Shown here piece after piece: positions 27,751-63,021 of a stretch of 64,000 bases of DNA. The stretch covers positions 124,001 to 188,000 of IMG/VR virus record IMGVR_UViG_3300027844_001828. One strand, given 5' to 3'. Position 1 is the first letter of the stretch. Each line of letters begins with the position of its first letter. The notes under the pieces were generated by a model. The model did not search any database. It was not told the DNA's origin and saw only the letters and a program-made list of their open reading frames with translations. The translations under genes and the position numbers were made by a program.

Positions 27751-27830
27751 AATATCTCTTCAACACAGCTTGAAAACCAGGTTTGGCGAGCTATATTCTA
27801 ACCTTAACCAAACAACAGGAGAGCATCAAA

Positions 27831-37394: not shown

Positions 37395-37949
37395 ATGAGT
37401 GAGGAATCAGCGAAAATATTGACCCTAGAGGATTATCATTATCATCTATTCAACAAGGAATTCAATCGCGAAAGTACTGGTGAGGCGATGTCATTTATTA
37501 TTACCAGGAATTTGATGAAAGAAAAGAAGCCTGAAGTTTTGAAAATGGTTATCACTTCTCCAGGCGGAGATGTCAGTTCTGCTTTTGCTCTAATTGATAC
37601 AATGAAGGGATCAAAAATACCCATATACACTTATGGATTGGGAGTCGTCGCTAGTTGTGGCGTGTTAACGTTTATTGCCGGAGAAAAAGGGCATCGATAC
37701 ATTACAAAGAACACACAGATACTTTCTCATCAATATCAATGGGGAAGCTATGACAAATATCATGAGTTAATGTCAATCGTGGGTGAATTCAAAAATATCC
37801 ACAAAAGGTTCATTCGACATTACAAGAAATGCACTGGCTTATCGAAAAAGGAGATTAAGAAGTATCTTCTTCCCGCTAAGGACGTTTGGTTGACAGCACA
37901 AGACGCTGTTGATCTCGGCATGGCAGATGAAATCGTTGATTTTTATTAA
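37395..37949 (+). CDS. clpP: ATP-dependent Clp protease proteolytic subunit
   Basis: ITSPGG, VASCG (Ser), LSHQ (His), KDVWLTAQDAVDLGMAD (Asp). Confidence 0.92.
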   Translation: MSEESAKILTLEDYHYHLFNKEFNRESTGEAMSFIITRNLMKEKKPEVLKMVITSPGGDVSSAFALIDTMKGSKIPIYTYGLGVVASCGVLTFIAGEKGHRYITKNTQILSHQYQWGSYDKYHELMSIVGEFKNIHKRFIRHYKKCTGLSKKEIKKYLLPAKDVWLTAQDAVDLGMADEIVDFY

Positions 37950-39575: not shown

Positions 39576-40613
39576 GTGAAAAGAATGATAAAATTCACAG
39601 GCATTGGCGCGTTTAGAAACGTCATTAAAGCTGTTTGCCATCGTTCCGCCTATATTGGTATGGACGATCAAGGCGAGCCTATTTATGACGGGACCAGACC
39701 AAAGCCAACGATCACATTCAATGGTGCTGTTAAGCTTCATGGAACTAACGCTGGTGTTTCTTATGAGCATGCGACCGGAGAATTTTGGGCGCAATCAAGG
39801 AAAAATACCATCACTCCAGAGAAAGACAATGCGGGCTTTTCCTTCTTTGTCGAATCTCACAAGGATGTCTTTCTTGAAATGTTCAAGAGCCTCCCATGTG
39901 ACGGAATAACAACCATTTATGGAGAGTGGTGCGGCAAGGGTGTTCAAAGCACGGTTGCCATTACTGAACTTGATAAATTCTTCGTGATCATTGGTGTTAA
40001 AGAGAGTCCTCTTGAGCCAAGCGAAGATGAAGTTGCGATCTGGCTCCCTGATGATAAAACACAGCCGTTGTCTTCAAATGATGATAGGGTCTTCAACATT
40101 CTTGACTTTCCTACGTTCTCAATTGATATAGATTTCAAGAACCCTGAACTCTCAACGAACAGGATGGTTGAAATCACAGCAGCTGTCGAGGCAGAGTGTC
40201 CAGTTGCTAAGCAGCTTGGTGTTTCTGGAATTGGAGAAGGTGTTGTTTGGAAGTCTGACGTTAATGGAGAGAGATATATCTTCAAGGTTAAAGGCGACGA
40301 ACACGCTGGCAAGTCCAAGGTCAAGACGCTTAAGCCTGTTGACAATGAAAGGCTTCAAAGGATTAACGACATTGCTGAGCAAGTAACTCCAGTGTGGAGA
40401 CTCGAACAGGCTATTCAAGAGACCTTTGACACCAATAATGGTGGCGATATCGACAGAAAAGGTCTTGGAGATTTCCTCAGATGGGTTGTCAAAGACGTGC
40501 TCAAAGAAGAGATCGATGTTATTAGCGATGCTGGTTTCGAACCAAAAGACGTTAATAAGAAGATTTCTGAAGTTTGTAGAACTTGGTTCTTCGAAAGGGA
40601 AAGCCAGGTTTAA
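39576..40613 (+). CDS. RNA ligase, Rnl2 family
   Basis: Motif I VKLHGTN, IYGEWCG, IGEGVVW, FKVKG; GTG start. Confidence 0.88.
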   Translation: MKRMIKFTGIGAFRNVIKAVCHRSAYIGMDDQGEPIYDGTRPKPTITFNGAVKLHGTNAGVSYEHATGEFWAQSRKNTITPEKDNAGFSFFVESHKDVFLEMFKSLPCDGITTIYGEWCGKGVQSTVAITELDKFFVIIGVKESPLEPSEDEVAIWLPDDKTQPLSSNDDRVFNILDFPTFSIDIDFKNPELSTNRMVEITAAVEAECPVAKQLGVSGIGEGVVWKSDVNGERYIFKVKGDEHAGKSKVKTLKPVDNERLQRINDIAEQVTPVWRLEQAIQETFDTNNGGDIDRKGLGDFLRWVVKDVLKEEIDVISDAGFEPKDVNKKISEVCRTWFFERESQV

Positions 40614-43989: not shown

Positions 43990-44930
43990 ATGTTGGAAGT
44001 GGTTAACGCCGCATCTAACAGAAAGTAAAAACTGAATATTTAATTTAAGGGCAGTATGATGTCCTCCTGTTCCCTTCGGGTAACAGGTTAAGATAAGCCA
44101 TGGAAACATGGTGAAATGGGGGACCCGCTACGGGCCTCGCCAAACTCTTCGGAGAGTGGTCAGTTATGCAAACCAAGCTTCTGTGAATTTCCCTCTTGGG
44201 GAGTTATACTTGAAGGTGGAGATTAAATGAATGTGGTGGCCAACGGTGGCTATGTTCTACTAACGTTAGCGACGAGAACTTATCTTATGCCAAACATCGA
44301 AAGTTAAGAAGCAAAGGGTAGTTGTGTTGTCTGAGTTTGCAGACAAAGGCTTCACAGCAGATTGTTGGGTAACAGGAAACCATTTAACAATGGGGGACCT
44401 GAAGTCCTGTAAATCCGTCTGGTAGCCCGCAAGGCCAAAGATATGAGGTGTGTGGCATTCTACTTCTCAAAAGGAAGCGGAACCATCGAGAGCGCACATC
44501 TTGGTAGATTTATCTGTAGCTCAATAGCAGAGCTATTCCCTCATACGGAATCGGTTTTGGTGCAACTCCAAACGGATATTTTTTAACGAAAATAAAAAAA
44601 CGCAAAGACGCTCTCGGTAGTAGGTGAAAATGGCCTAATTCCAAATCCTTCGGGTAATTTGGAGACGTGAAGCTCGCAAGGCAGATCGTTTTAGGACAAG
44701 TTAAAATTTAGTGGATTAGCGTTCACGAACTGTTCATAAGGCAGGAATGGAAACGAGTTCTGATTAGCTTACTATGACGGCGCAGTCGCAGGCGCTTAAT
44801 AAAATTGCGGTCATGATCGATGTCTGGTGTCCAGCTTGCTGGCCCAGAAGGAAATTAGGGCAAGGCACGTCGCAAGCGTACTGTAATCCTGAAGAGTCGA
44901 TTATTGAAGGTGTATTTCTCAACCTTTTAA
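43990..44930 (+). ncRNA. large structured ncRNA, GOLLD-like (~940 nt)
   Basis: Bracketed by promoter and terminator; UUCG and GNRA hairpins (CCTGTT-CCC-TTCG-GGT-AACAGG, CCATG-GAAA-CATGG, CTC-TTCG-GAG, GCCC-GCAA-GGC, ATCC-TTCG-GGT); motifs GGGTAGTTGTGTTG, GTGTGTGGCATT..CTCAAAAGG, CGCAAAGAC, TTAGTGGAT, CGCAAG as recalled for GOLLD. Confidence 0.75.
44510..44580 (+). tRNA. tRNA-Met(CAT)-like element embedded in the GOLLD-like RNA
   Basis: Acceptor TTATCTG/CGGATAT (1-72 mismatch), D arm GCTC-AATAGCA-GAGC, anticodon arm ATTCC-CTCATAC-GGAAT, T arm TTTGG-TGCAACT-CCAAA; no encoded CCA; atypical T loop. Confidence 0.7.
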
Positions 44931-47027: not shown

Positions 47028-49082
47028 ATGAAGCACTTCATTTTTTTGAGAAACAGTCTTGTACAATTCCCGGCCCAAGCCAAGGATGACCAAGCGTCAA
47101 GAAATATCGTCGGAACGATTTGTTCCAATTTGCTTTATTATGGGTATATATTCTCAACAGAAGCCTTGCGTGAATTCAACAAGTTAAGCGATGAAAACGT
47201 CATTGCGTGGTGGGAGACCGTCGAGCCTGCATTTAAGGAAATCACTGGTGAGTCCAAGAATATGGGTGATCATGTTGTCTATAAGAACTTTCCAAAGGAA
47301 GTACTTGATAAGTCATTGGCCGAGTATTGGATTTGCCAAATCTTTATGTACCTTGGCGTTCCAAATGAATTTTTCACGACCGAAGAGGTCGAAAGAGACC
47401 AGATGTTTGAAAGTATTTCTCTTAAGACACTTCAAGTCGCAAGAGCAAATAAGGAGCAGGACATCTGTCATGAGCTTTGTTTGACTCCGGCCAGATGGAC
47501 TGATGAGCAATCAATGTTTGTTGAACATCTTATTATCAATGAGAAGTGCTATTTTAATTTGTCAAAAATCCCCTTCAAGGAAAACATGATCCAAGTCGCA
47601 GTCTTGGCCATGAATAATGGTTTGGCGGCGAGTGTCAATTCAGCCACGGATGTGTTGCGCCTTGCAATTGGATTGTCCGATGGTGACATAACCATGCGAA
47701 CCAACACGCCATTTAGAAACTTTACGCGGAAGGAAAGACGTTTCTTGCTCACCTTGATTGAAAATCAGAATGATTGTGAGGAAGACATCGCTATGGACAA
47801 GAATCGTTGGAAGAAGCTTTTAAACAGATTGCATCCAGGCGATTATAAGAATGCTTTCCCGAATGTGGTGAAGGCAAATAACAACTTGTACAACAACAAC
47901 GTTGTCAGCTTCAATTCAAAGCTTGAGAAATATCTTGAGACTGAAGACGCATACGCTCTCGTTCTTCTTAAGAGCAGACCCGGTGTCTTTGCAAGAAGAT
48001 TGTCTCACGCTATTTCAATATTTGGAAGCGCGGCCATCGACGCTTTCGCAGAAATTTGTCCAAAGCTCACGGTTATTAAACTCCTTAAGGTGAAGAAGTT
48101 CTTTTCAACCTTGAAGGAAAGAAATCATCTTGTTTATCCGCCGAAGAGTAATTGGGCCAAGTTGCAGATCGTTGAAAACTCAAAGGCGATACGTCACAAT
48201 CCACAGGTCATAACTCTTATTGGGAAGATCGACGATGCTCTTAATGAGAAGATGAGTGGAATTTCTGTCAATCTTGATTCCAGAACGAGTCTCGTTAAAA
48301 TCCAGGGCAACGACTCTGAATTAACGAACTATGGTCGTGGAACCGTGTTCCCGATTCCAGAGAATATTAATTTCATCAGAAGCGCAAGCTATTGGGAATT
48401 ACCTGACACTTTTAACAATTGGTACGACAATGGTTGGAACTTCTTTAACAAGGATTGGAAGGAAAAGGGCGCGTGTTGCTGGGCGAATATGACTTTCGCC
48501 AGAAAGGGATGCGCATTCTCTGGCGATCCAACCAACTCAAAGACTGCTGACGGAAAGGCGTGTCAAATGATCGACTTGTACATTGACAAGTTGTTAGCTT
48601 TTGGAGTACGTTATGCTGTTTGGAATGTCTTGTGCTATTCTCATAAGAAGTTCAGCGAGGCCACTGAGGTCTTTGGTGCGCTTCAATGGGGTGAGGCTCC
48701 GCAAAAGGGTAAGCTCTTCGAGCCAAGCCGTTGCCAACTCTCATTTCCAATTACTGGTGAATGCTATACCAAGTATATCGCATACATTGACTTGGAGAAG
48801 CGTGAACTTGTCTACATGGACGCTAACTTCAAGGCTGACGTTTCTTCCGCAAAGGAAAATGGTCGTATGCTTTCAGAAGTAATGCCAGCCTACATTGAAT
48901 ACTTGAATTCGTTGCCGAGCGTGTTCGATCTCTTCTCACATGCGAAGCAGGACGTGAATGGGACCGCTGTAGCCTATGACGATAGCAATATCGATATCAA
49001 GGGCACAAGTGCCTATGTATTCAATCCGACAAATGAGAACAACTCGTTCGAGCAGCTTGAAGTCGCCAAATTTTTATCTTAA
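47028..49082 (+). CDS. large hypothetical protein with C-terminal TerD-like region
   Basis: RPGVFARRL, GRGT.FP, FSGD.T, MIDL.IDKL, VRYAVWNV..YS..KF features of Ter-associated stress proteins. Confidence 0.6.
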   Translation: MKHFIFLRNSLVQFPAQAKDDQASRNIVGTICSNLLYYGYIFSTEALREFNKLSDENVIAWWETVEPAFKEITGESKNMGDHVVYKNFPKEVLDKSLAEYWICQIFMYLGVPNEFFTTEEVERDQMFESISLKTLQVARANKEQDICHELCLTPARWTDEQSMFVEHLIINEKCYFNLSKIPFKENMIQVAVLAMNNGLAASVNSATDVLRLAIGLSDGDITMRTNTPFRNFTRKERRFLLTLIENQNDCEEDIAMDKNRWKKLLNRLHPGDYKNAFPNVVKANNNLYNNNVVSFNSKLEKYLETEDAYALVLLKSRPGVFARRLSHAISIFGSAAIDAFAEICPKLTVIKLLKVKKFFSTLKERNHLVYPPKSNWAKLQIVENSKAIRHNPQVITLIGKIDDALNEKMSGISVNLDSRTSLVKIQGNDSELTNYGRGTVFPIPENINFIRSASYWELPDTFNNWYDNGWNFFNKDWKEKGACCWANMTFARKGCAFSGDPTNSKTADGKACQMIDLYIDKLLAFGVRYAVWNVLCYSHKKFSEATEVFGALQWGEAPQKGKLFEPSRCQLSFPITGECYTKYIAYIDLEKRELVYMDANFKADVSSAKENGRMLSEVMPAYIEYLNSLPSVFDLFSHAKQDVNGTAVAYDDSNIDIKGTSAYVFNPTNENNSFEQLEVAKFLS

Positions 49083-49501: not shown

Positions 49502-51475
49502 ATGAAAAAAATTAATCGTGACGAGTTGATCGGTAAGATTAAGGAAAGAGAGTCGAAGCTTGAAAACGCTTCGATTGAACTCAAAAAACATTTCGTTGGT
49601 CTTAATCCAACAATCGATGAAATAATCGATTCAATAAGAGTCTGGTACATTATGCCAGAAATTATCACACATCCGGTAATCGTAAATCTTTGGGGAATGA
49701 CTGGAGTTGGGAAAACCGATTTGATTCGTCGCCTTGTACAGCTTCTTGATCTTAGTGATCGTTTTCTTGAAATGCCAATGGACATTGAAGACACAAGTAA
49801 CTTCCACTGGCACAGTTCAATTCAAGGTGTTCTTGGATGTAGCAGTCTTGAGCCCGAAACTCCAGGCGTTGTTCTCTTTGACGAATTCCAACGTTATCGC
49901 ACCATTGACGAGCATGGCCATGAGCGTACCGATCTTAAGAGGTTTCAAGATATTTGGACCCTTCTTAGCGATGGAAAGTTTTCAAACTCCGGCAAGGGTA
50001 AGAATGAGATCCTTGAGATGTTAATGGACACTCTTTATTATGAAGAGAGAAGTGGAGACGACGACGCCGATGTAGAGCCCCCTATTGAACATGGTAATTT
50101 GACAACTAAGAGTAAGAACAAGAAAAATAAGGAAGTCAGCACTAAGAAGCGCTTTAGCTTCAGTTTCTATTCTGCCAAATCATTAAAGAAGACTCTCAGA
50201 ATCCCTGACACCATTGAAACCATAATGAAATGGACCGCCGAAACCAAAAAGAAGAAAATCATGGAGGCAATGGAAAGAGATGATATCCTTCATGGTGAAA
50301 GCTATTCCCAACTTTTGATTTTCATTTGTGGTAATCTTGATTCTGCATTCTGGATGGCCTCCCGCGCTGAAGATGCAGATACCGATGCAGATATCTTGCA
50401 CAAGCGAAGTCTTGATATTAACACAATAGATATCCGCACTTCATTGAAAACGAGATTCAGGTATGAACAGATTGCCCGACTTGGCAATACTCATATCATT
50501 TATCCGTGCTTGTCTTCAAAATCTTACCGGGAACTTATTTCTAGAAAGATCATAGACGCAACCAATAGTTTTAAGGCAAGCACCGACATTGACATCAAAG
50601 TTGATCGTTCGGTAAACAATGTGATATACAGAAATGGGGTGTTCCCCGCTCAAGGTGTAAGGCCAGTATTTAGTACGATCAACAGTTTGTTTACAACTTC
50701 AATGCCACCATTTATCATGGCGGCGCTCTTAGAAGACTGTAATCAAATTGACGTATCCTTCAAAGACAACAAAATGGTTTGTAAAATACGCGATCAAAAT
50801 CTCAGTAAGAAGGTGACCTGTAGTATTGACAATATTAAGGGCAAGACTTCTGAGGAACAAAAGCATCTCGTGGCGTTGCACGAAGCTTCACATGCTGTTG
50901 TTTATATGTTGAAGTTTGGCGTTGCGCCATGTCAGATTAAAAGTAATATATCAATGTTCTCTGGCGGCTTTGTAATGCCACACTCTATGTTAGAGTCAAA
51001 GAATATCTTGATAAGCTTGATTCAGGTTTATCTTGCTGGCCGTCTCGGTGAAATCGCATTTTTTGGTGACGGGATGACCTCGTCAGGGTGCGCTTCCGAT
51101 CTTATGGAAGCAACTAAGTTGGCCAGTAAAATGCTCCGTCGTTACGGCATGGGTGATAGCTTGTCAGTTGTTGTGACATCTAACTTTGAAGATGCCAGTC
51201 TTCTTAATCTTGATGTTGACGGAACAAACAAAGATATTGATTTGATACTTGACAATCGAGCCAAGGAAACGTCTATTATCATTAACGAAAATTTATCCTT
51301 CATTGGCGCAATCGCTGATGAATTGATGAGAAAGAATGGTGAGATGACAGATAAAGAGGTCGCTAAAATAGCCGAAGAGTTTTGTGAAAATAAAATTGAG
51401 TGTCTCCCAGCTGATCATAAAATCACTGAGAGTTATGTTGATAAGTATAATGAGAGGCGAACGGATGAAAATTAA
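49502..51475 (+). CDS. AAA+ ATPase fused to C-terminal M41 (FtsH-type) metallopeptidase; no TM segment
   Basis: Walker A GMTGVGKT, Walker B VLFDEFQ, ALHEASHA, LAGRLGE, SDLMEAT. Confidence 0.85.
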   Translation: MKKINRDELIGKIKERESKLENASIELKKHFVGLNPTIDEIIDSIRVWYIMPEIITHPVIVNLWGMTGVGKTDLIRRLVQLLDLSDRFLEMPMDIEDTSNFHWHSSIQGVLGCSSLEPETPGVVLFDEFQRYRTIDEHGHERTDLKRFQDIWTLLSDGKFSNSGKGKNEILEMLMDTLYYEERSGDDDADVEPPIEHGNLTTKSKNKKNKEVSTKKRFSFSFYSAKSLKKTLRIPDTIETIMKWTAETKKKKIMEAMERDDILHGESYSQLLIFICGNLDSAFWMASRAEDADTDADILHKRSLDINTIDIRTSLKTRFRYEQIARLGNTHIIYPCLSSKSYRELISRKIIDATNSFKASTDIDIKVDRSVNNVIYRNGVFPAQGVRPVFSTINSLFTTSMPPFIMAALLEDCNQIDVSFKDNKMVCKIRDQNLSKKVTCSIDNIKGKTSEEQKHLVALHEASHAVVYMLKFGVAPCQIKSNISMFSGGFVMPHSMLESKNILISLIQVYLAGRLGEIAFFGDGMTSSGCASDLMEATKLASKMLRRYGMGDSLSVVVTSNFEDASLLNLDVDGTNKDIDLILDNRAKETSIIINENLSFIGAIADELMRKNGEMTDKEVAKIAEEFCENKIECLPADHKITESYVDKYNERRTDEN

Positions 51476-51635
51476 AGAACTCCAAGAATTAGTCAATGGT
51501 AGATTCATTGACGCCTTTGGCAGAACACCACTTCGGCAGCGACAGGAAGATATTTTGGGCGAGGCGATTGAACTCAAAAACGCAACAGATATTACGAATC
51601 TCAGAGAAGAGACGGGGGATTTGCTTCAACAATGA
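51465..51635 (+). CDS. MazG-like helical fragment, apparently the frameshifted N-terminus of the NadD gene
   Basis: EDILGEAIEL...NLREETGDLL; continuation (AST)MMLCSESGWSVEEL lies in another frame. Confidence 0.55.
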   Translation: MKIKELQELVNGRFIDAFGRTPLRQRQEDILGEAIELKNATDITNLREETGDLLQQ

Positions 51636-52342
51636 TGTTGTGTAGTGAGTCTGGCTGGTCAGTAGAAGAGCTTGTGCAGTCAACTCTTAATAAGACAGAG
51701 AGAAGAAAGGAGCAATACCACACGTTGGGGAGAAAGACAAAGGTCGCTCTTCTTGGTGGGGCTTTTAATCCGCCTACGATTGGCCACTTAAGGCTTGCAC
51801 AGTTCATTCTCGATACAAGTAAGAACTTCGATGAGGTTTGGTTTGTACCGTGTTATCAGCACATGTATAACAAAGAACTCGTTACACCAGAGCATAGATT
51901 GGCTATGTGTAACTTGTTATGCGCTAACGATTGCAGAATAAAGACATTTGATTATGAGATCAAAAATCAATTACGTGGTGAGACTTACCATTTTGTAAAG
52001 AGATTGCTTGATGAAGACTTTGCAAAAGACCAATATGATTTTAGTATGATAATTGGGTTGGACAATGCTAACACATTTGATAAGTGGGTGAACTACGAAG
52101 ATCTTGAGAAGATGATGCGCTTTGTCGTGGTGTCTCGACAAGGGACCGAAAGAGATGAGTCTGTAGACTGGTACTTAAAGCCACCACACATTTATCTTTA
52201 CAGTGGTGGTGATGTCCCAGAGATATCTTCAACGGAAATCAGAAGGTGTATCGTCGAAGACGACACATCACAAGCCGCTTACGTTAAAGAGTTCATGGAT
52301 GATGGGGTATGGAAATACCTTTGTGATAACGAACTTTATTGA
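51632..52342 (+). CDS. nadD: nicotinate-nucleotide adenylyltransferase
   Basis: LLGGAFNPPTIGH, HRLAM, IIGLDNANTFDKW, EISSTEIR. Confidence 0.88.
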   Translation: MMLCSESGWSVEELVQSTLNKTERRKEQYHTLGRKTKVALLGGAFNPPTIGHLRLAQFILDTSKNFDEVWFVPCYQHMYNKELVTPEHRLAMCNLLCANDCRIKTFDYEIKNQLRGETYHFVKRLLDEDFAKDQYDFSMIIGLDNANTFDKWVNYEDLEKMMRFVVVSRQGTERDESVDWYLKPPHIYLYSGGDVPEISSTEIRRCIVEDDTSQAAYVKEFMDDGVWKYLCDNELY

Positions 52343-53809: not shown

Positions 53810-55471
53810 TTAACCGCTTGAACTGCTTGAGCAACTACTTGAACTGCTTGAGCAACTACTTGAACTTGAACTACTGTTACATGCCGCCGCAGTTATAGTA
53901 CAGCCACCACCATATCCATTATAGGCACCAGTGGCTGGAGAGGTTCCAGAATCGAACACGTAGCAACGTGGATTATCTCCTCCGTATGAGTTTTCATTAG
54001 CAAGAATCCATAATCCACCATCATAGTCACTGTAGAACAGTCTAAATAATTCATTGTTGTCTCTATGGGTATAAATCCAACGACTTCCACCTGTTACAAA
54101 TGACAACGTTGATGTTTGCCAGTATCCTTTACCACCAGTTGCACAGTAGATTCCAGAATATTCATCTGCGGTTCCAGTGACCTTATATGCTTGTTCGATA
54201 ATTGAATCGGCAGAACTCGAACTGCATGAGCAGCTTGAGCTACTTGACGGTGAAGGGTCAAGGGACATGCTACTACTACTACTGCTTAAGCTACTTGAGC
54301 TACTTGAGCTACCACATGCTGCTGTAATTAATGTGAGGTCATCATTTCCCCAAACTCCAATTGGAGGCGAGTCGGCACTAAAAGGGATCGATACGGCTTT
54401 GTTAAAACCATTATATGTACTTGGAGCAAGAACCCATCTTCCCACTTCTCTTTCTTCATAAAATAAGATCTTGGTGGCATCGGCGGCGTTTTCATAAACG
54501 AACTTGCTTCCGCCAGCAACAAATGCACCATCTAAGAAATAGGCGACATGATCAGGGCAGTAGACGCCATTGTATCCAGAGGTTTCAAATCCGGTTATCT
54601 TATATGATTGGGCTCCAAACGGATCGACGCTGGAACTACTTGAGCTACTAACCCAACTTGAACATGAGCTTGAACTACATGAGTTTGAACTTGATGAAAC
54701 CCAACTTGAACAAGATGAGCTTGAGGAACTTGAGGAAGATGATGAGCAACTACATGAGCAACTGCTTGATGAACTTGAGGATGAGCTACCACATGTTGCC
54801 GTTGCAATTACTGCGCTCCCGTCCCATGATCCAGTGGGTGGAGTCGTTCCATTGTCTTGTATTAAATCTATTTCGTTTTGGCCGTCATATAAATCTTCAT
54901 TTGCCAATATCCACCATCCACCAGCATAATTGTTGTAAAACAAGAACAAATCATTAGTTGGATCTTGATATCTCAATCTGCTTCCACCAGATACCCATGA
55001 ACCGTGATCATAATAACCAGAGTCAAAGGCGCAATAAACACCGTTCTGAGCTTGGGTTAAACCACCAACACTAAATGCTGATACAGCAAGATTGTCGAGG
55101 GAGCTTGAAGAGCTTGAGCAGCTACATGATGAGGAAGAACTTTGGGAAACTGAGGAACATGAGCTACTTGAGCTTGAACAATCGACATTTTGTGTTATGG
55201 TAAGACCACCGTCACCCCAGACACCGGGTGGCGGCACTAAGGCGGAATGCTTCAGATTAGTGTATTGATTGAAGCCGTTGTAACTTTGAGCTATGGTCCA
55301 TCTATTAATAGTACCGTAAATCTCATAAAAAATCTGCTTGGTGGCGTCATCTCTATTGTTATAGATTTGTCTTGTCCCACCGCCAACGAAGGCTCCGCTT
55401 TCATAGTACCCTAAAGAGTCTTCACAATAGACACCATCAAAACCAGTTGAATTGCTAATTCGTATAGCCAT
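53810..55471 (-). CDS. four-repeat extracellular/virion-like protein with Ser/Cys linkers
   Basis: Four ~95-aa units GxYC...GY....FV.GG.R..Y...LFY....G.W.LA...P..G.W...IT...C separated by S/C runs. Confidence 0.8.
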   Translation of the reverse strand: MAIRISNSTGFDGVYCEDSLGYYESGAFVGGGTRQIYNNRDDATKQIFYEIYGTINRWTIAQSYNGFNQYTNLKHSALVPPPGVWGDGGLTITQNVDCSSSSSSCSSVSQSSSSSCSCSSSSSSLDNLAVSAFSVGGLTQAQNGVYCAFDSGYYDHGSWVSGGSRLRYQDPTNDLFLFYNNYAGGWWILANEDLYDGQNEIDLIQDNGTTPPTGSWDGSAVIATATCGSSSSSSSSSCSCSCSSSSSSSSSSSCSSWVSSSSNSCSSSSCSSWVSSSSSSSVDPFGAQSYKITGFETSGYNGVYCPDHVAYFLDGAFVAGGSKFVYENAADATKILFYEEREVGRWVLAPSTYNGFNKAVSIPFSADSPPIGVWGNDDLTLITAACGSSSSSSSLSSSSSSMSLDPSPSSSSSCSCSSSSADSIIEQAYKVTGTADEYSGIYCATGGKGYWQTSTLSFVTGGSRWIYTHRDNNELFRLFYSDYDGGLWILANENSYGGDNPRCYVFDSGTSPATGAYNGYGGGCTITAAACNSSSSSSSCSSSSSSCSSSSSG

Positions 55472-55565
55472 GTAAAAAATTTCCTCCGCTTGGGCTCAAG
55501 CCATTCTAAAAAGTTATAGTGTCTTAGTATTTCGCTATATTTCTGCTTGTTCCCTTCCTGAGAGC

Positions 55566-55594
55566 TTGACAGACACCACAAGTGGTGCTATATT
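55566..55594 (+). promoter_or_regulatory. sigma70-like promoter (TTGACA-N17-TATATT) with palindromic spacer
   Basis: Spacer contains CACCAC-AA-GTGGTG. Confidence 0.6.
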
Positions 55595-55641
55595 CCTCTA
55601 ATTTGTAACAATATTACGACACGACCGCTTAAGGACATATT

Positions 55642-56202
55642 ATGAAAATAAGAAAAGCCGTATATGCTGGCAGCTTCGATCCTGTGACCAATGGGTATCT
55701 TGATATCATCAAGAGAGCGTCCAAAATTTTTGATGAGGTTATCGTTGCAATTGGTATGAATCCTGGTAAAACACCAATGTTTTCTGCTGATGAAAGATAT
55801 AAATTTGTACATGAAGCCACGTCAGCGAAGAAATTTGGATCGTTGTTGAGCGTGACATATTCGAGGAAGGATTCTAAAAAGATAGAAAAATTTATTCTTT
55901 CGACTGAGGCCGGGGTAGATTACAGTTGCTTGACAGAAAGACGCCTTCATGGTCTTGACTATTCAATAATTGCAGCCCCAAGGAATATTTACGAGAAGTA
56001 CGCCAAGGCAATCGCCAGTGAATACATTGTTCATGGTGGTTGCACAATAAATGAATACGTGAATGGTAGACATAAGTTTTTGAAGAGCACAATAGAGTCG
56101 GATGTTTTCTTGACTGACGAATTTGCACCATCAGAAGCAATGGCTCAGGAAAACATGGAATGGGAAATTGAAAATCTTTATAAAATAGCGGGGTCAGAAT
56201 AA
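55642..56202 (+). CDS. chimeric ORF: CoaD (PPAT) N-terminus with HxGH motif altered, unrelated C-terminus
   Basis: [41 protein letters not shown]; similarity ends near aa 60. Confidence 0.65.
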
Positions 56203-56504
56203 TGGAATTCCCAACAGATCCAGGGAAATCAAGAATAGAAGACACAATAGGGAAGTCTTCAATAGAAAAAAAAGAAGTCGTATCATATGTTGATACTGAA
56301 CATAGTGGGCTCCCTCCTGAACATCGTCCACATCCATTGGATAGAGTCCTTGTAGATTCTTTCTCTTCGATTAGTGACTCAGAGATTAATGAATTGACTT
56401 TTTACGTTCCCATCACGGTATCATTTAAGGACGCTGCCGAAATGGCTGAAAAGATAAAATCAATTAGAACATTGTTCCCTAATTCAACCTTGGAGAAAAG
56501 ATGA
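56202..56504 (+). CDS. hypothetical protein
   Basis: TAATG coupling. Confidence 0.55.
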   Translation: MEFPTDPGKSRIEDTIGKSSIEKKEVVSYVDTEHSGLPPEHRPHPLDRVLVDSFSSISDSEINELTFYVPITVSFKDAAEMAEKIKSIRTLFPNSTLEKR

Positions 56505-56779
56505 AAACATTAGACCTCAAAAAAGTAGCTGAAAAGATCGTTAATTCAGGAGGCTCTCGTAAAATGCTCATGTCATCTAAAGATTTTTGTGAGGTGTCGA
56601 AGAATAGGGATGAGCGGTTTTGGGCTGTCCATTCTTCCTTTTGGGAAGGCGGTGAGAAGTTTGTCATGGTTTGCCCATATATTATGTTGAAAATTTTGAG
56701 CCCTCGCCCCAGACGTGTCGTAAACATGGACCCTTTCCAAGTTATAGTGAAATATTTGTCGCAAACCCCTTGGAATTAA
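56501..56779 (+). CDS. hypothetical protein
   Basis: ATGA overlap, GGAG RBS. Confidence 0.6.
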   Translation: MKTLDLKKVAEKIVNSGGSRKMLMSSKDFCEVSKNRDERFWAVHSSFWEGGEKFVMVCPYIMLKILSPRPRRVVNMDPFQVIVKYLSQTPWN

Positions 56780-56851
56780 CTTTTGCTGAGATATAGTGAT
56801 CACGTTGATATTTAATCCAAACAATTTCTAACTCAGATCGGAGAATATAAC

Positions 56852-58294
56852 ATGGGCCTCAAAGCACACAAGTTTGGCACACATCCGTTTGACACAACCT
56901 ACGATGTGATTGATTCCGCCACACTCCAATGCACTGACCTCAAGAAAGGGTCTAACAAGTTCTATCAGATGGAGTTACACAAAAACGCCTCTGGTTATTG
57001 GAGGATCTTCACAGCTAACGGGCGCACAGGCTCATACTCTACCCAATTGGAGCGTATGCCTGAAGACGAGACGGCAGGACGCGCAGAGTACGCAAAGATT
57101 TTCCGCACCAAGACCACCCGCAAGAGTCAGCCTTATACTAAGGTTGATGTTGTGAATTCCAACCTTGGAACAGATGCTGGGAACCAAGTTGTTCAATCAG
57201 ACGACTTCGATCAGAAGAACATCACCGTTGCCGACACAGGCAAAAAGAATAAATCAAAGAAGGTTATTCCAATCAAGATTTCTCAGTTGGTTTCCAGGCT
57301 CTACAGTGAAGCCGGTAACGCTTGTAAAAGCCAGCTTCATGGAAGTGTTCAAGCGAGTGAAGAGAACCCTCTTGGGACTCTTACAAAAACTCAGATTGAA
57401 GATGGTAGAGCCATTCTTCAAGAGGCGAATGCCATCTTGGTCGCTGACGCCACTCGTATTGACTCAATTGAATCTGAGGTTATCGCTATAACTGACAAGT
57501 TCTACAGCACTATTCCACAGGAAATTGCTCTTCGCCCGAAAACTAAAGCCGGAGAAGATGCCCGTGATGATTGGATGCGTGGAATTGCCCTCAACAATGC
57601 TACAATCCTTGATGATAAGTTTGATCTTCTCGACCTTCTTGGTGATGTGAAGGGAATGATGGGCGGTTTCGCCACGACAGATGAAGAAAAACGTTTGAAA
57701 GAGGCGAACTGTGAGTTTTCTGAAGTGGACAGTGCCACTTTCAAACAGGTCTGCGATCTTATTGTCAATACTCAGTCGAAGCACCACAATTGGAAGTTGA
57801 ATCCAAGGCGAATTTTTTCAATGAAAAGCAAATCTCAATCAAGTCATAAAAAAACAATGGGGGAAACCGGGAATTGTCAAGAACTTTTCCATGGATCTGG
57901 ATCTCAAAATATTTTGGGAATATGTAAACGAGGAATTTTAATACGTCCTCCTGGGGTCTATATTACTGGCGCGTTATTGGGAAACGGGGCTTATTTCGCT
58001 AATAATAGTACAAAATCAAGTCAATATTCTACTGGCAGATTTGGTGGATCTGGATCTTCCAATGGAAATACTTCATTTATGTTTGTTGCCAACGTGGCTC
58101 TTGGGAAAGTGAAAAAATTAAGCAAGGGTAGCAGTTCTATTGTCAAAGCACCGAATGGTTTTGATTCTGTTATGGGGGCTGCTAATTATACAGATTGTGG
58201 ATGGAGTAAACTCCTTCATGATGAATTTGTAGTTTATGATGTTAAACAGCATACTCTTGACTACTTGATTGAATTTGAACAATCTTATAGATAG
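56852..58294 (+). CDS. WGR-domain poly(ADP-ribose) polymerase (WGR + helical + catalytic)
   Basis: NKFYQMEL..NGRTG (WGR); LGTLTKTQIEDG..IL, FYSTIPQ (helical); LFHGS, LGNGAYFA, STKSSQYS, MFVANVALG, HDEFVVY (H-Y-E triad). Confidence 0.9.
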   Translation: MGLKAHKFGTHPFDTTYDVIDSATLQCTDLKKGSNKFYQMELHKNASGYWRIFTANGRTGSYSTQLERMPEDETAGRAEYAKIFRTKTTRKSQPYTKVDVVNSNLGTDAGNQVVQSDDFDQKNITVADTGKKNKSKKVIPIKISQLVSRLYSEAGNACKSQLHGSVQASEENPLGTLTKTQIEDGRAILQEANAILVADATRIDSIESEVIAITDKFYSTIPQEIALRPKTKAGEDARDDWMRGIALNNATILDDKFDLLDLLGDVKGMMGGFATTDEEKRLKEANCEFSEVDSATFKQVCDLIVNTQSKHHNWKLNPRRIFSMKSKSQSSHKKTMGETGNCQELFHGSGSQNILGICKRGILIRPPGVYITGALLGNGAYFANNSTKSSQYSTGRFGGSGSSNGNTSFMFVANVALGKVKKLSKGSSSIVKAPNGFDSVMGAANYTDCGWSKLLHDEFVVYDVKQHTLDYLIEFEQSYR

Positions 58295-58385
58295 AGAGGG
58301 ATTTAACTTTAAGGGTATACTATTGACGAGAGAGAGATTTCTGGTCCAGAAGTAGAGAAGAAAAAAAATATTTTTAATCCAGAGC

Positions 58386-59033
58386 TTGAATCACCGAGAT
58401 GAGGGGGTTATATTGAAAACAGTAAGAACAACAGTGGATGGAAAGACTGAGTTTGAGATGATCGAGGAAGGTGCGGTTGTGGCGGCTTGCAAATACACTC
58501 AGGGAAACGCATCGTTCATACCAACCATTTCAAATCTTAAGGTGAAGCTAAGTGAGAGAAAGAAAGGGTACGCTCGAAAACTAATGATGAAGATCATGGA
58601 AGGGTTTGGCCCTCCGATCCAACTACAGGCGATACCATTTAGAGATTTGGGAGAGAAACAAGATCCTATCACAGTTGAAGATCTAAGAAAATTTTATGAG
58701 TCATTGGGTTTTGAAGGATTGCCAGGAACAAAGTTTATGCTCTGGTATTTGAAAGACAATGATGAGAACATAGCCACGAAGCAATTCTCTTTGTATCTAT
58801 GGGAAGCGAGACTAACGAACATCGAAGGTATCTTTGGTACAGGAAAAACTGAAAAGGAATCAATTGGAGATCTTGTTTCAAGGTATCCAGTAATTTTCGG
58901 AGTCAAGAACATTGGAAAATCAGAAGACAACGATGCTTGGGCAACTGGAGATCTTGCTTCAAGGTATCCAACAATTTTCGGAGTTAAGAACATCGGAAAA
59001 TCAGAAGACAAAGAAGTGGCGGCAACTCATTAG
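58386..59033 (+). CDS. GNAT-like N-terminal domain plus duplicated C-terminal 27-aa repeat
   Basis: ERKKGYARKLM, LRKFYESLGF; repeat GDLxSRYPxIFGVKNIGKSED x2. Confidence 0.6.
   Translation: MNHRDEGVILKTVRTTVDGKTEFEMIEEGAVVAACKYTQGNASFIPTISNLKVKLSERKKGYARKLMMKIMEGFGPPIQLQAIPFRDLGEKQDPITVEDLRKFYESLGFEGLPGTKFMLWYLKDNDENIATKQFSLYLWEARLTNIEGIFGTGKTEKESIGDLVSRYPVIFGVKNIGKSEDNDAWATGDLASRYPTIFGVKNIGKSEDKEVAATH
58866..59010 (+). repeat. 81-bp-period tandem duplication
   Basis: GGAGATCTTG.TTCAAGGTATCCA..AATTTTCGGAGT.AAGAACAT.GGAAAATCAGAAGACA at 58866 and 58947. Confidence 0.9.
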
Positions 59034-59232
59034 AGTGTTAAGTGTTGAGGGAGAACTTGTTAATATTGTCATCCCTGGATTTAGTGCCACAGAAGTGATC
59101 ACCATTACAACTGATAACATTCCATCCGAAGTTTTATCAATTTTTGAACCAGACACAAGGGTTTATGCAAGAGTTAATATTGGGGTGGAAGATTCCCAAC
59201 ACCTTGATTTTTCAGATTGGAGTACATCATGA
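58912..59232 (+). CDS. hypothetical phage protein (true start uncertain, overlaps upstream gene)
   Basis: WRQLIRVLSV...IPG...IP...RVNIG...LDFSDW looks like a folded small domain. Confidence 0.45.
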   Translation: MENQKTTMLGQLEILLQGIQQFSELRTSENQKTKKWRQLIRVLSVEGELVNIVIPGFSATEVITITTDNIPSEVLSIFEPDTRVYARVNIGVEDSQHLDFSDWSTS

Positions 59233-59393
59233 GATATAGAATAACACTCTCAAACTCCACCGTCCCCTTGATTGCCAGAAAACATTTTTCAACCAGATGC
59301 CATGTTTGCAATAGTTTGTTTACCAGACATGGTTGTTCAAATTGTCCGCCAAGTCCAAGATATAACACCAAACAAAAAACAGGAGAGAGCAAG

Positions 59394-60041
59394 ATGCAAA
59401 AGACATTGACAGTAGCAGTGAGTGACGAAATCCACAATGGATTTGTAGCCAACGGCTGTGAATTCAGCGCCCATGACATCACCGTTGCCATTCGTAAAAA
59501 GATCAACGCGGGCGATTTGGAGATTCACGGTCTTCCGTTTCAAGATGTTGACGGGACTCCGAATACGCAGCGTATCGAACATGACGCTGTACGAACTGAA
59601 GTTCATGGTGTCTGTGGTGTTGATAACATCACCGGATATGCTCGCAAGTGGAACAGAACTGTCGGCTATTTTAGCTGGACCTTAGATGCTGCCACCGATG
59701 ACGATGACGATGACTTCGTAAACATTGCAACCAAGGATGGCACTTCCGTTATCTGGAATTCGCAAACACCAGCGCCCGCCCTCCCGCCAAAGACGCCGAC
59801 GATCAAGGCCAATGCGGCGGCAAATCCGAATGATCATATCGTCATCGGAAAGATCCTAAACTATGTCAATGGCAGAGTTAACGATGGTGTCAACCCCACG
59901 TTGAAGGCAACACAGAGTTGCATCAAGCGTAACCCTCTTACGGTCAGACAAATCTCTGATATCGTACAGAACAATGGTTACAAGATCAGCAATGATGGAG
60001 GAAAGGCGTACTGTTATTCCGAAATCACACCCTCAAGCTAA
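59394..60041 (+). CDS. hypothetical protein
   Basis: AGGAGAG RBS before ATG 59394. Confidence 0.7.
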   Translation: MQKTLTVAVSDEIHNGFVANGCEFSAHDITVAIRKKINAGDLEIHGLPFQDVDGTPNTQRIEHDAVRTEVHGVCGVDNITGYARKWNRTVGYFSWTLDAATDDDDDDFVNIATKDGTSVIWNSQTPAPALPPKTPTIKANAAANPNDHIVIGKILNYVNGRVNDGVNPTLKATQSCIKRNPLTVRQISDIVQNNGYKISNDGGKAYCYSEITPSS

Positions 60042-60062
60042 TTCGCGGGGTCATGGTATAAT

Positions 60063-60096
60063 AAGATGAGGGCTGCGAAAGCGGTCCTCATCTTTT
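60063..60096 (+). terminator. intrinsic terminator
   Basis: AAGATGAGGGCTGC-GAAA-GCGGTCCTCATCTT followed by TT. Confidence 0.8.
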
Positions 60097-60132
60097 GGTT
60101 ATAACTAAACTATTGCTAATATAGGTAAATAT

Positions 60133-60432
60133 ATGGATCAGTATAGAAATCAGGTAGACCGCTTCCTCATGGCATTTAATTCAATGAGTGCCCTGGTGAA
60201 GATTCATATGATAATGTTCGATGTATCAACTAAAACATTATCATTCTCTGTCTCATTAGAGATTTATGACAAGTATCTCAATGATGATAAGTATGGTAGC
60301 ATGAACAATTTCGTTCATTTGTCTCAGGCTTTTTTCGACCAAATACACGTGATTTCGAATTCATACTTCGGTGAATCTGTTGATTGGGACGAGGTCAATC
60401 AAATAGGAATGGTAAAAGTAGCTATAAAATGA
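60133..60432 (+). CDS. hypothetical protein
   Basis: ORF track. Confidence 0.55.
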   Translation: MDQYRNQVDRFLMAFNSMSALVKIHMIMFDVSTKTLSFSVSLEIYDKYLNDDKYGSMNNFVHLSQAFFDQIHVISNSYFGESVDWDEVNQIGMVKVAIK

Positions 60433-60503
60433 TGCAGGGGTTTTAGATTCAATTAATGAATAAATATCTTGTGGTTTAATTTTTATACTAGGGTCATTAA
60501 ATA

Positions 60504-62111
60504 ATGAAAATAAAAACAGTAAGAGTCGCTCAAGATGCCAATACTCAAATTAGACAAGATGCAGAAATTGCATTGGCAAACATAATTCAGTATCTTAGCA
60601 ATCAAAATGTTGATAAGGCAGTGGTTGATAATTTTTATGATGAGCTTGTCGGTGAGATCTCAAACATTGAGCTTGAAGGCAGAGAAGAAGAGATCGCAAG
60701 TATTTACATAGCGAACACTGTCTTGGCCGACCTTGTTAAAAACATTAAGATTTTAGATGCGGACAAAGATAGAGGTGCCTCCGCCGAGGATGTTGGATAT
60801 TTAATAGAGCAGACTTATGGGGCTGGTATTATTGATGCGATCAATGCAAATCCAGACAAGTTGACCCCAGCAGAGATGGATGAGAATATATCAATCGCCA
60901 CAGGCGGTCTGGATTTCACTCAGAAGTTTTTCAATCTCATTCCACATATAAGAGATTCGGCCACCACAGTGGCCGCTTACGATTTCAAGAGTGTGTTCGT
61001 GGCGTATGCCACAGAAGTAGATCTTCAAGACGGAGATAGTGAAGAACTAAAGAATATTCAATCCGTTTACCTCGCAATGTTATTGAAAGGGCATTTCAAT
61101 GCAGATGATCTAAACGCATCATTCATTAAATTAAAAGAAGTCGTGTCATCAAACAGGGCGAATCAGAGTCTTGAGCAAATCTGGTCCAGATATAATGATG
61201 CCGAAGATAAAGAAATTCCATTAAGAGATGCGATGGCGGCAATCAATGAGGCTACAACTTCACTTGAGAAATCGGTTTTTGGAACGGAAACATTTAAGGG
61301 TGAAGAAATTTCAGAACCAATGACCTTCTCTGACGAACCAATGTTCTTCTCTGACGAGCCAACGGTTGAAGAGCAATCTTCTGCGCTCGTCCCAACACCA
61401 GGGAATAAACAAGAAGAACCAGCGGCACAAGCGCCTGCGCAAGAAACGCCGCCGCCGAGTATGGACCCGTCGCCGCCGAAACCGACGCCGCCGAGTATGG
61501 ACCCACCGCCGCCGAGTATGGACCCGCCTATTCCACCTGACGTGAAAGAAGAGGAAAAGCCAGAACCACTTCCGGGCGAAACACAATCTCAGTACAATGA
61601 AAGAGCAAAGAGAATTGAAATAGCCGATGACGCCGAAGAAGAAGCGGCGATGGGTGTTATTTACAAAACGTTGAAAAGTCTTAAGATGGCGGACATGAGA
61701 ATTCGTGCCGCTTGGGAACGTTATAGATCCGGGGGAGAGTTTAACGACTTGAAGCAGGAGGTTGAAAAATATTTCTATGTAGAGTTGACGAATGTCGGCT
61801 CTGGTATTAAAGGAAAGATGAATGAAGGAGATCAGGCGGCGAAAGCGAAGGATGACCTTGGCTCTGCCGCTAACCAGAATACTCAGAATATGAATGAACA
61901 GGATATTAATGCTGACTTCAGTGCTTTCGGCTACGACACCGGATACATGGACCCAAATCAAACGTGGACAAGCGTGACTCTTAATAGGCTACCCAAAACT
62001 GCGAACTCAGGATTGGAGTTAAGACTAAGAATGGAAGACCCATTACCACCTGTCTATAGGGGGCTGATACCTTCACAGTCATCAGATTCTTTCTCTTTGA
62101 TAAGAAAATAG
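60504..62111 (+). CDS. large acidic helical protein with Pro-rich (PPSMDP)x3 hinge
   Basis: 535-aa ORF; repeats EPMxFSDEP and PPSMDP. Confidence 0.75.
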   Translation: MKIKTVRVAQDANTQIRQDAEIALANIIQYLSNQNVDKAVVDNFYDELVGEISNIELEGREEEIASIYIANTVLADLVKNIKILDADKDRGASAEDVGYLIEQTYGAGIIDAINANPDKLTPAEMDENISIATGGLDFTQKFFNLIPHIRDSATTVAAYDFKSVFVAYATEVDLQDGDSEELKNIQSVYLAMLLKGHFNADDLNASFIKLKEVVSSNRANQSLEQIWSRYNDAEDKEIPLRDAMAAINEATTSLEKSVFGTETFKGEEISEPMTFSDEPMFFSDEPTVEEQSSALVPTPGNKQEEPAAQAPAQETPPPSMDPSPPKPTPPSMDPPPPSMDPPIPPDVKEEEKPEPLPGETQSQYNERAKRIEIADDAEEEAAMGVIYKTLKSLKMADMRIRAAWERYRSGGEFNDLKQEVEKYFYVELTNVGSGIKGKMNEGDQAAKAKDDLGSAANQNTQNMNEQDINADFSAFGYDTGYMDPNQTWTSVTLNRLPKTANSGLELRLRMEDPLPPVYRGLIPSQSSDSFSLIRK

Positions 62112-62195: not shown

Positions 62196-62468
62196 ATGAG
62201 GTGTCTGATGACCACGAACAAGCAGATCGAAGAACTTCGCGAAGAGAACCGTGCCCTCAAGGCCAATCTCGCCAGAGCCAAGGGTTTGTTTCGTTCTCTT
62301 GAGTCAATGTTGGACATCAACGCCTCAATTCTCAAGGGCGACACCACGGGGTGTCACGACGCTTGGCGTTATACGGAAAAGGCAACATTTAACCTTCGCT
62401 CATTCTTTGACAGAGTTTATGGGGTAAAAGAACTCGTGGAGAAGAGCCGTGCAGAAAACCATTCATGA
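62196..62468 (+). CDS. small coiled-coil protein
   Basis: ELREENRALKANL; promoter TTGTAA-N16-TATGGT at 62123-62150. Confidence 0.6.
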   Translation: MRCLMTTNKQIEELREENRALKANLARAKGLFRSLESMLDINASILKGDTTGCHDAWRYTEKATFNLRSFFDRVYGVKELVEKSRAENHS

Positions 62469-63021
62469 TACGATAGAGTTCAAACCGGAATTGGTGTTTT
62501 TATCTTCGAAATACGGTAAGAAAGGGGGCATCTTCTCTCTTACCAACATTCCGATTGGAGAATCTATAACGATTGGGCGAAGCCCTAATTGTGACGTTTC
62601 GCGTCCGACAAGTAGTGCCTTAAGTAAAATACACTACAAAATCGTTAGGGTGGAGACCAAAAGGTTTGTTCTTGAAGACTGTGATAGCACGAATGGAACA
62701 TTCATCAATGGTTTGCAAGCTCATGAATCAAATATTGATGCCGGTGACATTATAGGCTCCGGTGATATTGAGATCTTGTTTAATGATGGCAATCCTCTCA
62801 ACACAAAGAACAAGGCAGTAATTGATTGGACTACAGAAAGTTTCAATGCCGAAGACATGGACAGCTTGAACCCATTCAACAATGGTGATTCAGCAATCGA
62901 TAAAATTAAAAAGAAAAAGACTGACTTAACGGTTAAGGTGATTTTATTTACCTTAGTCATCATCGCTTGCTTGGTCGGCGGATCATTGCTCGCATTATTA
63001 ATCGGATTGGGGATACTCTAA
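62449..63021 (+). CDS. FHA-domain protein with C-terminal TM anchor
   Basis: TIGRSPNCD, LSKIH, LEDCDSTNGTFING, GDII..G; C-terminal hydrophobic helix. Confidence 0.88.
   Translation: MQKTIHDTIEFKPELVFLSSKYGKKGGIFSLTNIPIGESITIGRSPNCDVSRPTSSALSKIHYKIVRVETKRFVLEDCDSTNGTFINGLQAHESNIDAGDIIGSGDIEILFNDGNPLNTKNKAVIDWTTESFNAEDMDSLNPFNNGDSAIDKIKKKKTDLTVKVILFTLVIIACLVGGSLLALLIGLGIL

Follow-up and report, generated by a model that had tools for sequence, protein, structure and literature searches.

In human PARP2 and PARP3, DNA breaks are sensed by the WGR domain alone and allostery of the helical regulatory domain (HD) is common to both enzymes (PMC10450202), which are released from HD autoinhibition (PMC10450202, PMC5052650). 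PARP3 mono-ADP-ribosylates the phosphates of DNA ends, and TARG1 reverses this modification (PMC5725667). The arrangement of WGR, HD, and ADP-ribosyltransferase (ART) domains is also typical of bacterial PARPs, in which YGR is the commonest form of the WGR motif (PMC5966428). PARP genes have been reported in silico in the phages Aeh1 and Cellulophaga phi4:1 (PMC4245714) and in jumbo phages such as XacN1, for which ORF414 is cited (Iyer et al., 2021; PMC7824862); PARTs have been listed with the commonest ART families of viruses (PMC9503650). PARP signalling is central to eukaryotic DNA-damage biology, while what it does in bacteria and phages has scarcely been probed by experiment. Here we describe a phage PARP encoded at 56852–58294 (+ strand) of a 64,000-nucleotide stretch (the window, to which all unqualified positions refer), which is contained as bases 124001–188000 in the 235,624-bp IMG/VR virus record IMGVR_UViG_3300027844_001828, estimated to be 93% complete. 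The same record carries a gene for a stand-alone macrodomain at 25222–25710 (+). On balance we favour the view that the PARP is a working PARP2/PARP3-like ADP-ribosyltransferase of minimal WGR/HD/ART layout, for which a mechanism may be proposed by analogy.

The PARP gene starts with ATG and encodes 480 residues, in which three Pfam domains all score above their gathering cut-offs: a WGR domain (residues 23–93, 56918–57130; E 8.7e-9, 35.8 bits against a cut-off of 22), an HD (PARP_reg; residues 143–267, 57278–57652; E 2.6e-9, 37.7 bits against 26.8), and an ART catalytic domain (Pfam PARP; residues 294–476, 57731–58279; E 1.6e-28). The best phmmer match in the Protein Data Bank (PDB) is DNA-break-bound human PARP1 WGR-CAT (4dqy_C; residues 20–475, E 1.3e-30), followed by PARP4, PARP2, PARP3, and the tankyrases. 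These scores, like those of the macrodomain given below, lie beyond the reach of chance. An AlphaFold2 model built from 30 homologues (pLDDT 81.6, pTM 0.76) contains the HD helices, and Foldseek places this model closest to break-bound WGR-HD-ART structures of PARP1 and PARP2 (E 3e-27 to 1e-24). A preliminary description of this DNA had proposed a WGR-like domain with NGR in place of WGR, an HD, and an H-Y-E triad within FHGS, GAYFA, and HDEFVVY; the first two are borne out by Pfam profiles above cut-off, and in the case of the HD also by a fold that matches the PARP1 HD-ART, with profile search and structure prediction both returning a PARP1/PARP2 architecture.

The triad is equally clear on alignment with PARP1. 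FHGS (346–349) aligns with PARP1 WHGS (H862), GAYFA (379–383) with GIYFA (Y896), and HDEFVVY (456–462) with YNEYIVY (E988), identifying H347, Y381, and E458 (codons 57890–57892, 57992–57994, and 58223–58225, +) as the H-Y-E residues. PARP1 K903, S904, and Y907 correspond to K388, S389, and Y392 of the phage protein. All six of these phage residues, together with G57 and R58 of the WGR motif, are invariant across 30 aligned homologues. The position of the acceptor-site tyrosine (PARP1 Y986) is occupied by H456, and this histidine is likewise invariant across the 30. The first position of the WGR motif is more variable, being Tyr in 26 of the 30 family members and Asn in the other four, which are confined to the query's subclade; the query lacks the Trp of the motif (Asn56), although its Gly and Arg are kept (N56-G57-R58, 57017–57025, +). 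Domains, triad, and NAD+-site residues together predict that the protein is of the clade-1 (PARP1/2/3-like) type. Since both its layout and the YGR variant, which is the phage-family consensus, are typical of bacterial PARPs (PMC5966428), it is better termed PARP2/3-like or bacterial-type than 'eukaryote-style', as the preliminary description had it with some overstatement.

Comparison with human PARP2 and PARP3 reveals a common WGR-HD-ART core, H-Y-E triad, set of NAD-site Gly/Ser/Lys/Tyr residues, and predicted fold. Neither the human enzymes nor the phage PARP has zinc fingers (PMC10450202), and any DNA sensing must therefore use the WGR domain. In contrast with PARP2 and PARP3, the phage protein (only ~18–25% identical to them) lacks a basic N-terminal tail, has Asn at the WGR aromatic position (Tyr in most of its family), carries His in place of PARP1 Y986, is always accompanied by a separate winged-helix neighbour gene, and has no HPF1 or PARG. 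HaPARP from Herpetosiphon aurantiacus and CdPARP from Clostridioides difficile have, by their published description, the same three domains and the H-Y-E triad, but act with a cognate PARG (PMC8120803), whereas no PARG was found in seven phage-family records.

Among phage proteins the nearest described case is ORF414 of XacN1 (BBA65562.1; annotated poly(ADP-ribose) polymerase), a jumbo-phage WGR plus PARP protein with 35% identity over the catalytic domain. XacN1, a phage of soil or of a plant pathogen, measures 385 kb; its ORF414 is 423 residues long, has a weak HD match, and is followed by a vWA protein (Pfam VWA_CoxE/VWA_2) instead of a winged-helix partner. XacN1 and the phage described here also both encode a RING_SCO0854-like protein ~10 kb from the PARP: the 684-residue MXAN_6230/SCO0854 RING-domain family protein at 47028–49082 (+) scores E 2e-47 with NCBIfam and E 2e-157 with phrog_33734 and shares 47% identity with XacN1 ORF396, and the next gene (49502–51475, +) encodes an AAA+ protein whose C-terminal part is FtsH-like. 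Alt, ModA, and ModB of T4 are likewise phage-encoded and carry out NAD+-dependent modification of host targets (PMC8120803), but they are mono-transferases of the R-S-E clade, have neither a WGR domain nor an HD, and belong to a different ART clade.

The PARP belongs to a substantial family. A word search of protein clusters at 90% identity gave at least 176 relatives; the 120 best listed are 42–58% identical to the query and 437–491 residues long. The listed relatives share all three Pfam domains with the query, and many lie on contigs of 200–250 kb (the largest 250 kb). DNA of the window recurs in metagenomes of marine and seawater origin, across 17 studies or more, and the PARP is conserved across a marine phage clade of ~200–250 kb. 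Short contigs from one metatranscriptome library map onto the PARP and both flanking genes, a weak sign of PARP expression in which DNA carry-over is possible. A megablast search with 55600–59100 matched none of 50,697 phage records, and a pattern scan of 185,579 prokaryote species genomes returned no close PARP relative, although it used two peptide patterns only and does not imply absence.

The most consistent comparative signal is the pairing of the PARP with a tandem winged-helix protein. In the window this partner is a protein of 215 residues (59394–60041, +) that begins at an internal ATG of the ORF 59217–60041. A core hidden Markov model detects a homologue downstream of the PARP at all 11 distinct family loci examined, and it is kept even at loci that have nothing else in common. 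Its AlphaFold2 model comprises two winged-helix-like domains (1–100 and 145–210), whose structural neighbours are winged-helix DNA binders only, at modest similarity (VIA Z 6–8); the partner proteins of relatives carry additional HTH-like or SH3-like N-terminal parts. A partner profile search retrieved 15 unnamed proteins, none with Pfam domains, and further winged-helix members are found on contigs equal in size to the PARP-bearing ones. Pfam, PHROG, and NCBIfam assign the partner to no family, Foldseek against PDB and BFVD gives no match at E <= 1e-3, and a single-sequence word search finds only the protein itself. An Atlas feature search scored 0.78, under the usable level, while an Atlas shape search put a T4 rIIB cluster in its top row, which at TM 0.41 is no more than a weak lead. 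The constancy of the pairing suggests that the partner may be a DNA-targeting subunit, a regulator, or the main substrate of the PARP.

If the phage PARP works as PARP2/3 do, its WGR domain would sense a nucleic-acid end or break; HD autoinhibition would then be released, and ADP-ribose would be moved from NAD+ onto the PARP itself and onto nearby targets. These might be proteins at DNA ends, possibly including the winged-helix partner, or terminal DNA phosphates; as with PARP3, the mark might even be placed on DNA-end phosphates. The macrodomain, which is adjacent to the PARP in some relatives and 31 kb away here, could plausibly remove the mark, and PncB, NadD, and NadE (with the nicotinamidase-like gene of relatives) would restore the NAD+ spent by the PARP, the ligase, and host NADases.

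Gene order in the relatives supports a tie between the PARP and NAD+/ADP-ribose metabolism. In relatives L007, L017/L018, and L021 the PARP has a macrodomain gene two genes downstream, and in L019 a macrodomain of a different lineage lies two genes upstream; both types fall within phrog_335. On a rough estimate, chance would put a single macrodomain gene no more than two genes away from a chosen gene in ~2% of genomes of ~250 genes, and two independent adjacencies in so few lineages are therefore unlikely to be due to chance. In L007, L017, L018, and L021 the 10 kb downstream of the PARP contain a nicotinamidase-like gene, an NAPRTase (PncB), and NadE, while in L019 genes for NUDIX, NAMPT, and cREC proteins are found, alongside the macrodomain, within 6 kb upstream. 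New to the description of phage PARPs are the size of the marine family, its invariable winged-helix partner, its recurrent macrodomain and NAD+ salvage neighbourhood, and the finding of no PARG in seven records. That last result comes from PF10021, which matched neither the phage's own genome nor six relatives, the positive control being found in Deinococcus; a search with PF05028 also gave no match, but its control was silent everywhere, making it uninformative. ADP-ribosylhydrolase (ARH; PF03747) was not matched in the phage's own genome or in the relatives.

The macrodomain of the window is a 162-residue protein (25222–25710, +; phrog_335) of the ALC1-like class and, within it, of the SCO6735/BT1257 subclass. 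It scores only 15.6 bits against Pfam Macro (cut-off 22), yet its phmmer matches in the PDB are strong: over residues 2–160 of the window protein it aligns with BT1257 from Bacteroides thetaiotaomicron (2fg1, E 1.9e-50) and SCO6735 from Streptomyces coelicolor (5e3b, E 1e-47). It is ~55% identical to these two solved bacterial proteins and more remote from ALC1, TARG1, Poa1p, and DarG. The alignment is full-length, and the catalytic Gln/Asn/His and the Gly-rich loop are kept: H25, N28, Q88, G90, G129, and G131 correspond to SCO6735 H24, N27, Q85, G87, G126, and G128. Three of these, Q88, N28, and G131, match the catalytic Gln85, Asn27, and Gly128 of SCO6735, in which mutagenesis showed His24, Asn27, Gln85, and Gly128 to be essential (PMC9411070). 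Unlike its bacterial counterpart SCO6735, the protein is phage-encoded and has Ala and Gly (A35 and G92) at the DNA-positioning Lys34 and Lys89; BT1257 keeps K34 but not K89. Of the catalytic residues Lys84 and Asp125 of TARG1, the position of the former is Gln in the window macrodomain, as it is in SCO6735. Similarity to TARG1 spans residues 102–159 only (E 2e-6) and that to the ADP-ribose 1''-phosphate phosphatase Poa1p (PDB 6lfu) residues 4–52 only (E 1.6e-4). The preliminary description was therefore right in seeing a real macrodomain at this position, but its type is that of SCO6735/BT1257 within the ALC1/TARG1/DarG class, and not strictly Poa1/TARG1. Nor does the protein match the model of the DarG antitoxin, which includes the C-terminal DarT-binding part: it scores 27.3 bits on NF048014 against a cut-off of 250, and has 162 residues where the model has 338.

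Several observations weigh against the PARP-centred reading. No experimental study of any phage PARP was found in the literature. The aromatic residue of the WGR motif, which in PARP1 stacks on the 5' terminal nucleotide, is replaced by Asn in the query, and DNA-end sensing may be altered in this subclade. Two PARP-bearing relatives, G005 and G007 (100% and 91% complete), have no macrodomain when searched with a profile of all five macrodomains, so that phage-encoded erasure is not essential. In the phage described here the PARP and macrodomain genes are 31 kb apart, and neither the macrodomain gene nor the NAD genes adjoin the PARP. Finally, the macrodomain class is present in 855 phage records, among them T4-like, Klebsiella, and Streptomyces phages, whereas a PARP was detected in 4 only.

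The distance between the genes, the relatives without a macrodomain, and the unequal phage counts would be expected if the macrodomain at 25222–25710 were an independent counter-defence, that is, an orphan DarG-like 'antitoxin' that strips ADP-ribose added by the host, through DarT or otherwise, from phage DNA or proteins and has no dedicated relation to the PARP. We regard this as a serious competitor, though with somewhat less than an even chance of being correct. The activity for which the macrodomain class is best known is the hydrolysis of thymidine-ADP-ribose made by DarT (PMC9411070). SCO6735 removes this mark very efficiently and in preference to protein substrates, while Glu/Asp-linked ADP-ribose on PARP1 E988Q is removed less well (PMC9411070). 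Neutralization of DarT by phage macrodomains, those of jumbo phages among them, is also proven, for AdfM of PhiKZ (PMC13309987) and for an antitoxin mimic of a Vibrio phage (PMC11481870). Like the window protein, these two are stand-alone phage macrodomains of the DarG/ALC1-like class; they are, however, DarG2-like, whereas the window macrodomain lies far below the cut-off of the DarG model (27 bits versus 250). Against an independent role stand the two separate lineages in which the macrodomain gene is within two genes of the PARP, which chance is unlikely to have produced, and the loss from the window protein of K34 and K89, by which SCO6735 positions DNA. The roles of own eraser and of anti-DarT factor are not mutually exclusive and may both hold. 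The reversible writer/eraser circuit of the preliminary description thus gains from the linkage in two relative lineages, but the pairing is not obligate, neither PARG nor ARH was found, and the two genes are far apart here.

The NAD+ supply side of the PARP2/3-like reading is well represented in the window. PncB, a nicotinate phosphoribosyltransferase (30082–31251, +), matches TIGR01514 (446.9 bits against 269.6) and Pfam NAPRTase; a NadD-like nicotinate-nucleotide adenylyltransferase (51632–52342, +) is borderline, though full-length, on TIGR00482 (112.1 bits against 112.45); and NadE, a glutamine-dependent NAD+ synthetase (35292–37226, +), matches NF002730 (837 bits against 473). Taken at their family assignments, the three make up a complete predicted Preiss-Handler route from nicotinate to NAD+. 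The phage's own genome has no match to the PncA-like protein of relatives, a nicotinamidase that would recycle nicotinamide set free by the PARP and whose gene is present in L007, L018, and L022. No NAMPT-type phosphoribosyltransferase was found in the phage, in which the sole NAPRTase-family gene is of the PncB type; NAMPT_N was seen only in relative L019. An NAD-dependent DNA ligase (27783–29780, +; phrog_3869 E 8e-152) is a second NAD+ consumer of the phage, which the NAD pathway would equally serve, and by analogy with NARP1-3, in which phage NAD+ synthesis is able to offset NAD+ loss (PMC13464706), the pathway could also offset host NADase defences. NARP1-3 consist of Adps/Namat, NAMPT/NMNAT, and PnuC/NadR, whereas this phage would work from nicotinate with PncB, NadD, and NadE; relative L019, unlike this phage, does have NAMPT and NUDIX beside the PARP. 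The claim that a phage NAD pathway feeds the circuit accordingly stands as far as the three genes are concerned, but none of them adjoins the PARP in this phage.

What the PARP makes is a separate question. It may be a true polymerase that, like human PARP1/2 and the bacterial HaPARP and CdPARP, builds long poly(ADP-ribose) on itself and on host or phage proteins, with turnover left to the host or not needed in a lytic cycle. The H-Y-E triad and K388, S389, and Y392 (PARP1 K903, S904, and Y907) are invariant, as such an enzyme would have them, and bacterial WGR-HD-ART PARPs with H-Y-E make poly(ADP-ribose) in vitro (PMC8120803). However, the preliminary description's association of the triad with polymer synthesis goes only part of the way, for the triad is present and needed yet is no proof of polymer: PARP4, also among the matches and also H-Y-E, is labelled a mono-transferase in the PDB. 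In addition, the acceptor-site Tyr is replaced by an invariant His, cognate PARGs undo the modification made by the characterized bacterial PARPs (PMC8120803) but none was found in the seven phage records, and the linked eraser class takes off terminal or whole-chain ADP-ribose, not polymer. We therefore consider long polymer a doubtful product, and mono- or short oligo-ADP-ribose likelier, given the lack of a PARG, an eraser of the TARG1/SCO6735 type, and the invariant His456.

Hyperactivation of eukaryotic PARPs depletes NAD+, which could be counted in favour of a PARP that works chiefly by consuming NAD+, as a host shut-off or a toxin-like effector. Iyer et al. tie phage PARTs to polymorphic-toxin versions (PMC7824862), but the phage needs NAD+ for its ligase and has three NAD-synthesis genes, and an HD brake with a WGR sensor argues for regulated and not constitutive activity, which makes such a role highly improbable.

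The PARP2/3-like reading can be taken a step further, although we consider the step speculative and on present evidence unlikely to be right in full: the PARP and winged-helix protein would form a DNA-end-sensing system that marks termini or the proteins bound to them with mono- or oligo-ADP-ribose, and ALC1-like macrodomains would be optional erasers, with dedicated NAD+ recycling in support. If true, such a system could shield or regulate phage ends during injection, replication, or packaging, or alternatively could disable host end-processing enzymes, and the marine phage family could also be a reservoir with ties to the ancestors of the eukaryotic clade-1 PARPs. The family bears in any case on a proposed origin of eukaryotic PARPs in bacterial and phage conflict systems. 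It offers a simple two-gene core, PARP and winged-helix partner, with natural variants that have or lack the macrodomain and NAD-recycling genes, and thereby a minimal system for asking how a PARP with WGR as its only sensor is switched on, which of mono-ADP-ribose, polymer, and a DNA-linked mark it makes, and whether phage ALC1-like macrodomains serve their own writer, counter host DarT-type attack, or both.

The viral nature of the source record follows from its being an IMG/VR entry with a CheckV estimate, from its phage-type replication genes identified with PHROG, which are accompanied by a ribonucleotide reductase and the NAD-dependent ligase, and from its similarity to XacN1; Terminase_6C (PF17289) had no match across the phage's own genome. 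The window also encodes one tRNA-Met (CAT; 44510–44580, +) and a 338-residue actin-fold protein (32561–33577, –; Pfam Volactin E 2e-74, with a weaker MreB match), a jumbo-phage actin homologue that could position DNA or compartments. A ClpP-family protease (37395–37949, +) and an RNA ligase (39576–40613, +) are encoded near the NAD genes.

Around the PARP, six same-strand genes lie between a promoter-like site and a terminator-like hairpin. The former (55566–55594, +) is sigma-70-like, with TTGACA, a 17-nt spacer, TATATT, and a TG element, and is the best in the region at 11/12 matches; promoter-like sites across the region are no more numerous than in shuffles, so the call on this one is a position-based inference only. 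The hairpin (60063–60094, +) has a 14-bp stem and a T-rich tail and is the sole such site in 55300–60600. The first gene of the unit (55642–56202, +) encodes a PPAT/CoaD-like nucleotidyltransferase (Pfam CTP_transf_like E 1.1e-14) that reaches 76 bits on NCBIfam coaD, below the cut-off of 103 and over residues 6–62 only. All of its PDB matches are phosphopantetheine adenylyltransferases and NMNAT models match much less well, and we rejected it as an NMN adenylyltransferase feeding the PARP. Between this gene and the PARP are two small overlapping ORFs of 100 and 92 residues (56202–56779, +), which have no Pfam or PHROG match and no homologue in the flanks of relatives. Downstream of the PARP, a GNAT-like ORF of 215 residues (58386–59033, +; Pfam Acetyltransf_7 E 3.2e-4, below cut-off) has no homologue at the other PARP loci examined, and its insertion between PARP and partner is confined to this phage; its C terminus contains two near-identical repeats of ~22 residues.

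Other neighbours merit brief mention. On the opposite strand just upstream of the unit, a 553-residue protein without a family match (53810–55471, –) has four similar modules of ~100 residues between long Ser/Cys runs, and 2.4 kb downstream of the unit lies a gene for an FHA-domain protein (62449–63021, +; Pfam E 1.3e-13). FHA domains read phospho-threonine and are found in eukaryotic break-repair factors. Proteins of vWA type recur near phage PARPs (L007 13743–14480, L018 6271–6996, L020 14556–15206), with weak VWA matches upstream of the PARP in L007 and L017, and a conserved protein of 241–245 residues downstream of phage PARPs has by eye an apparent DxSxS motif. Just upstream of the PARP region in L017 (1–2792) and L021 (1–2040) are genes for the alpha subunit of a DnaE-type polymerase III, for S-adenosylmethionine decarboxylase, and for spermidine/spermine synthase, which has the look of phage polyamine synthesis. 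The PARP of L022 is found among genes for RNA ligase, RlaP, and ATP-dependent DNA ligase, and L019 encodes a Band_7 protein ~9 kb upstream of its PARP. The contig of family member P0076 (ENA ERZ27252310) carries a T4 rIIB-family protein at –1.4 to –0.3 kb from the PARP and, at –9.6 to –6.8 kb, a 931-residue protein with a major-vault-protein shoulder domain (PF11978).

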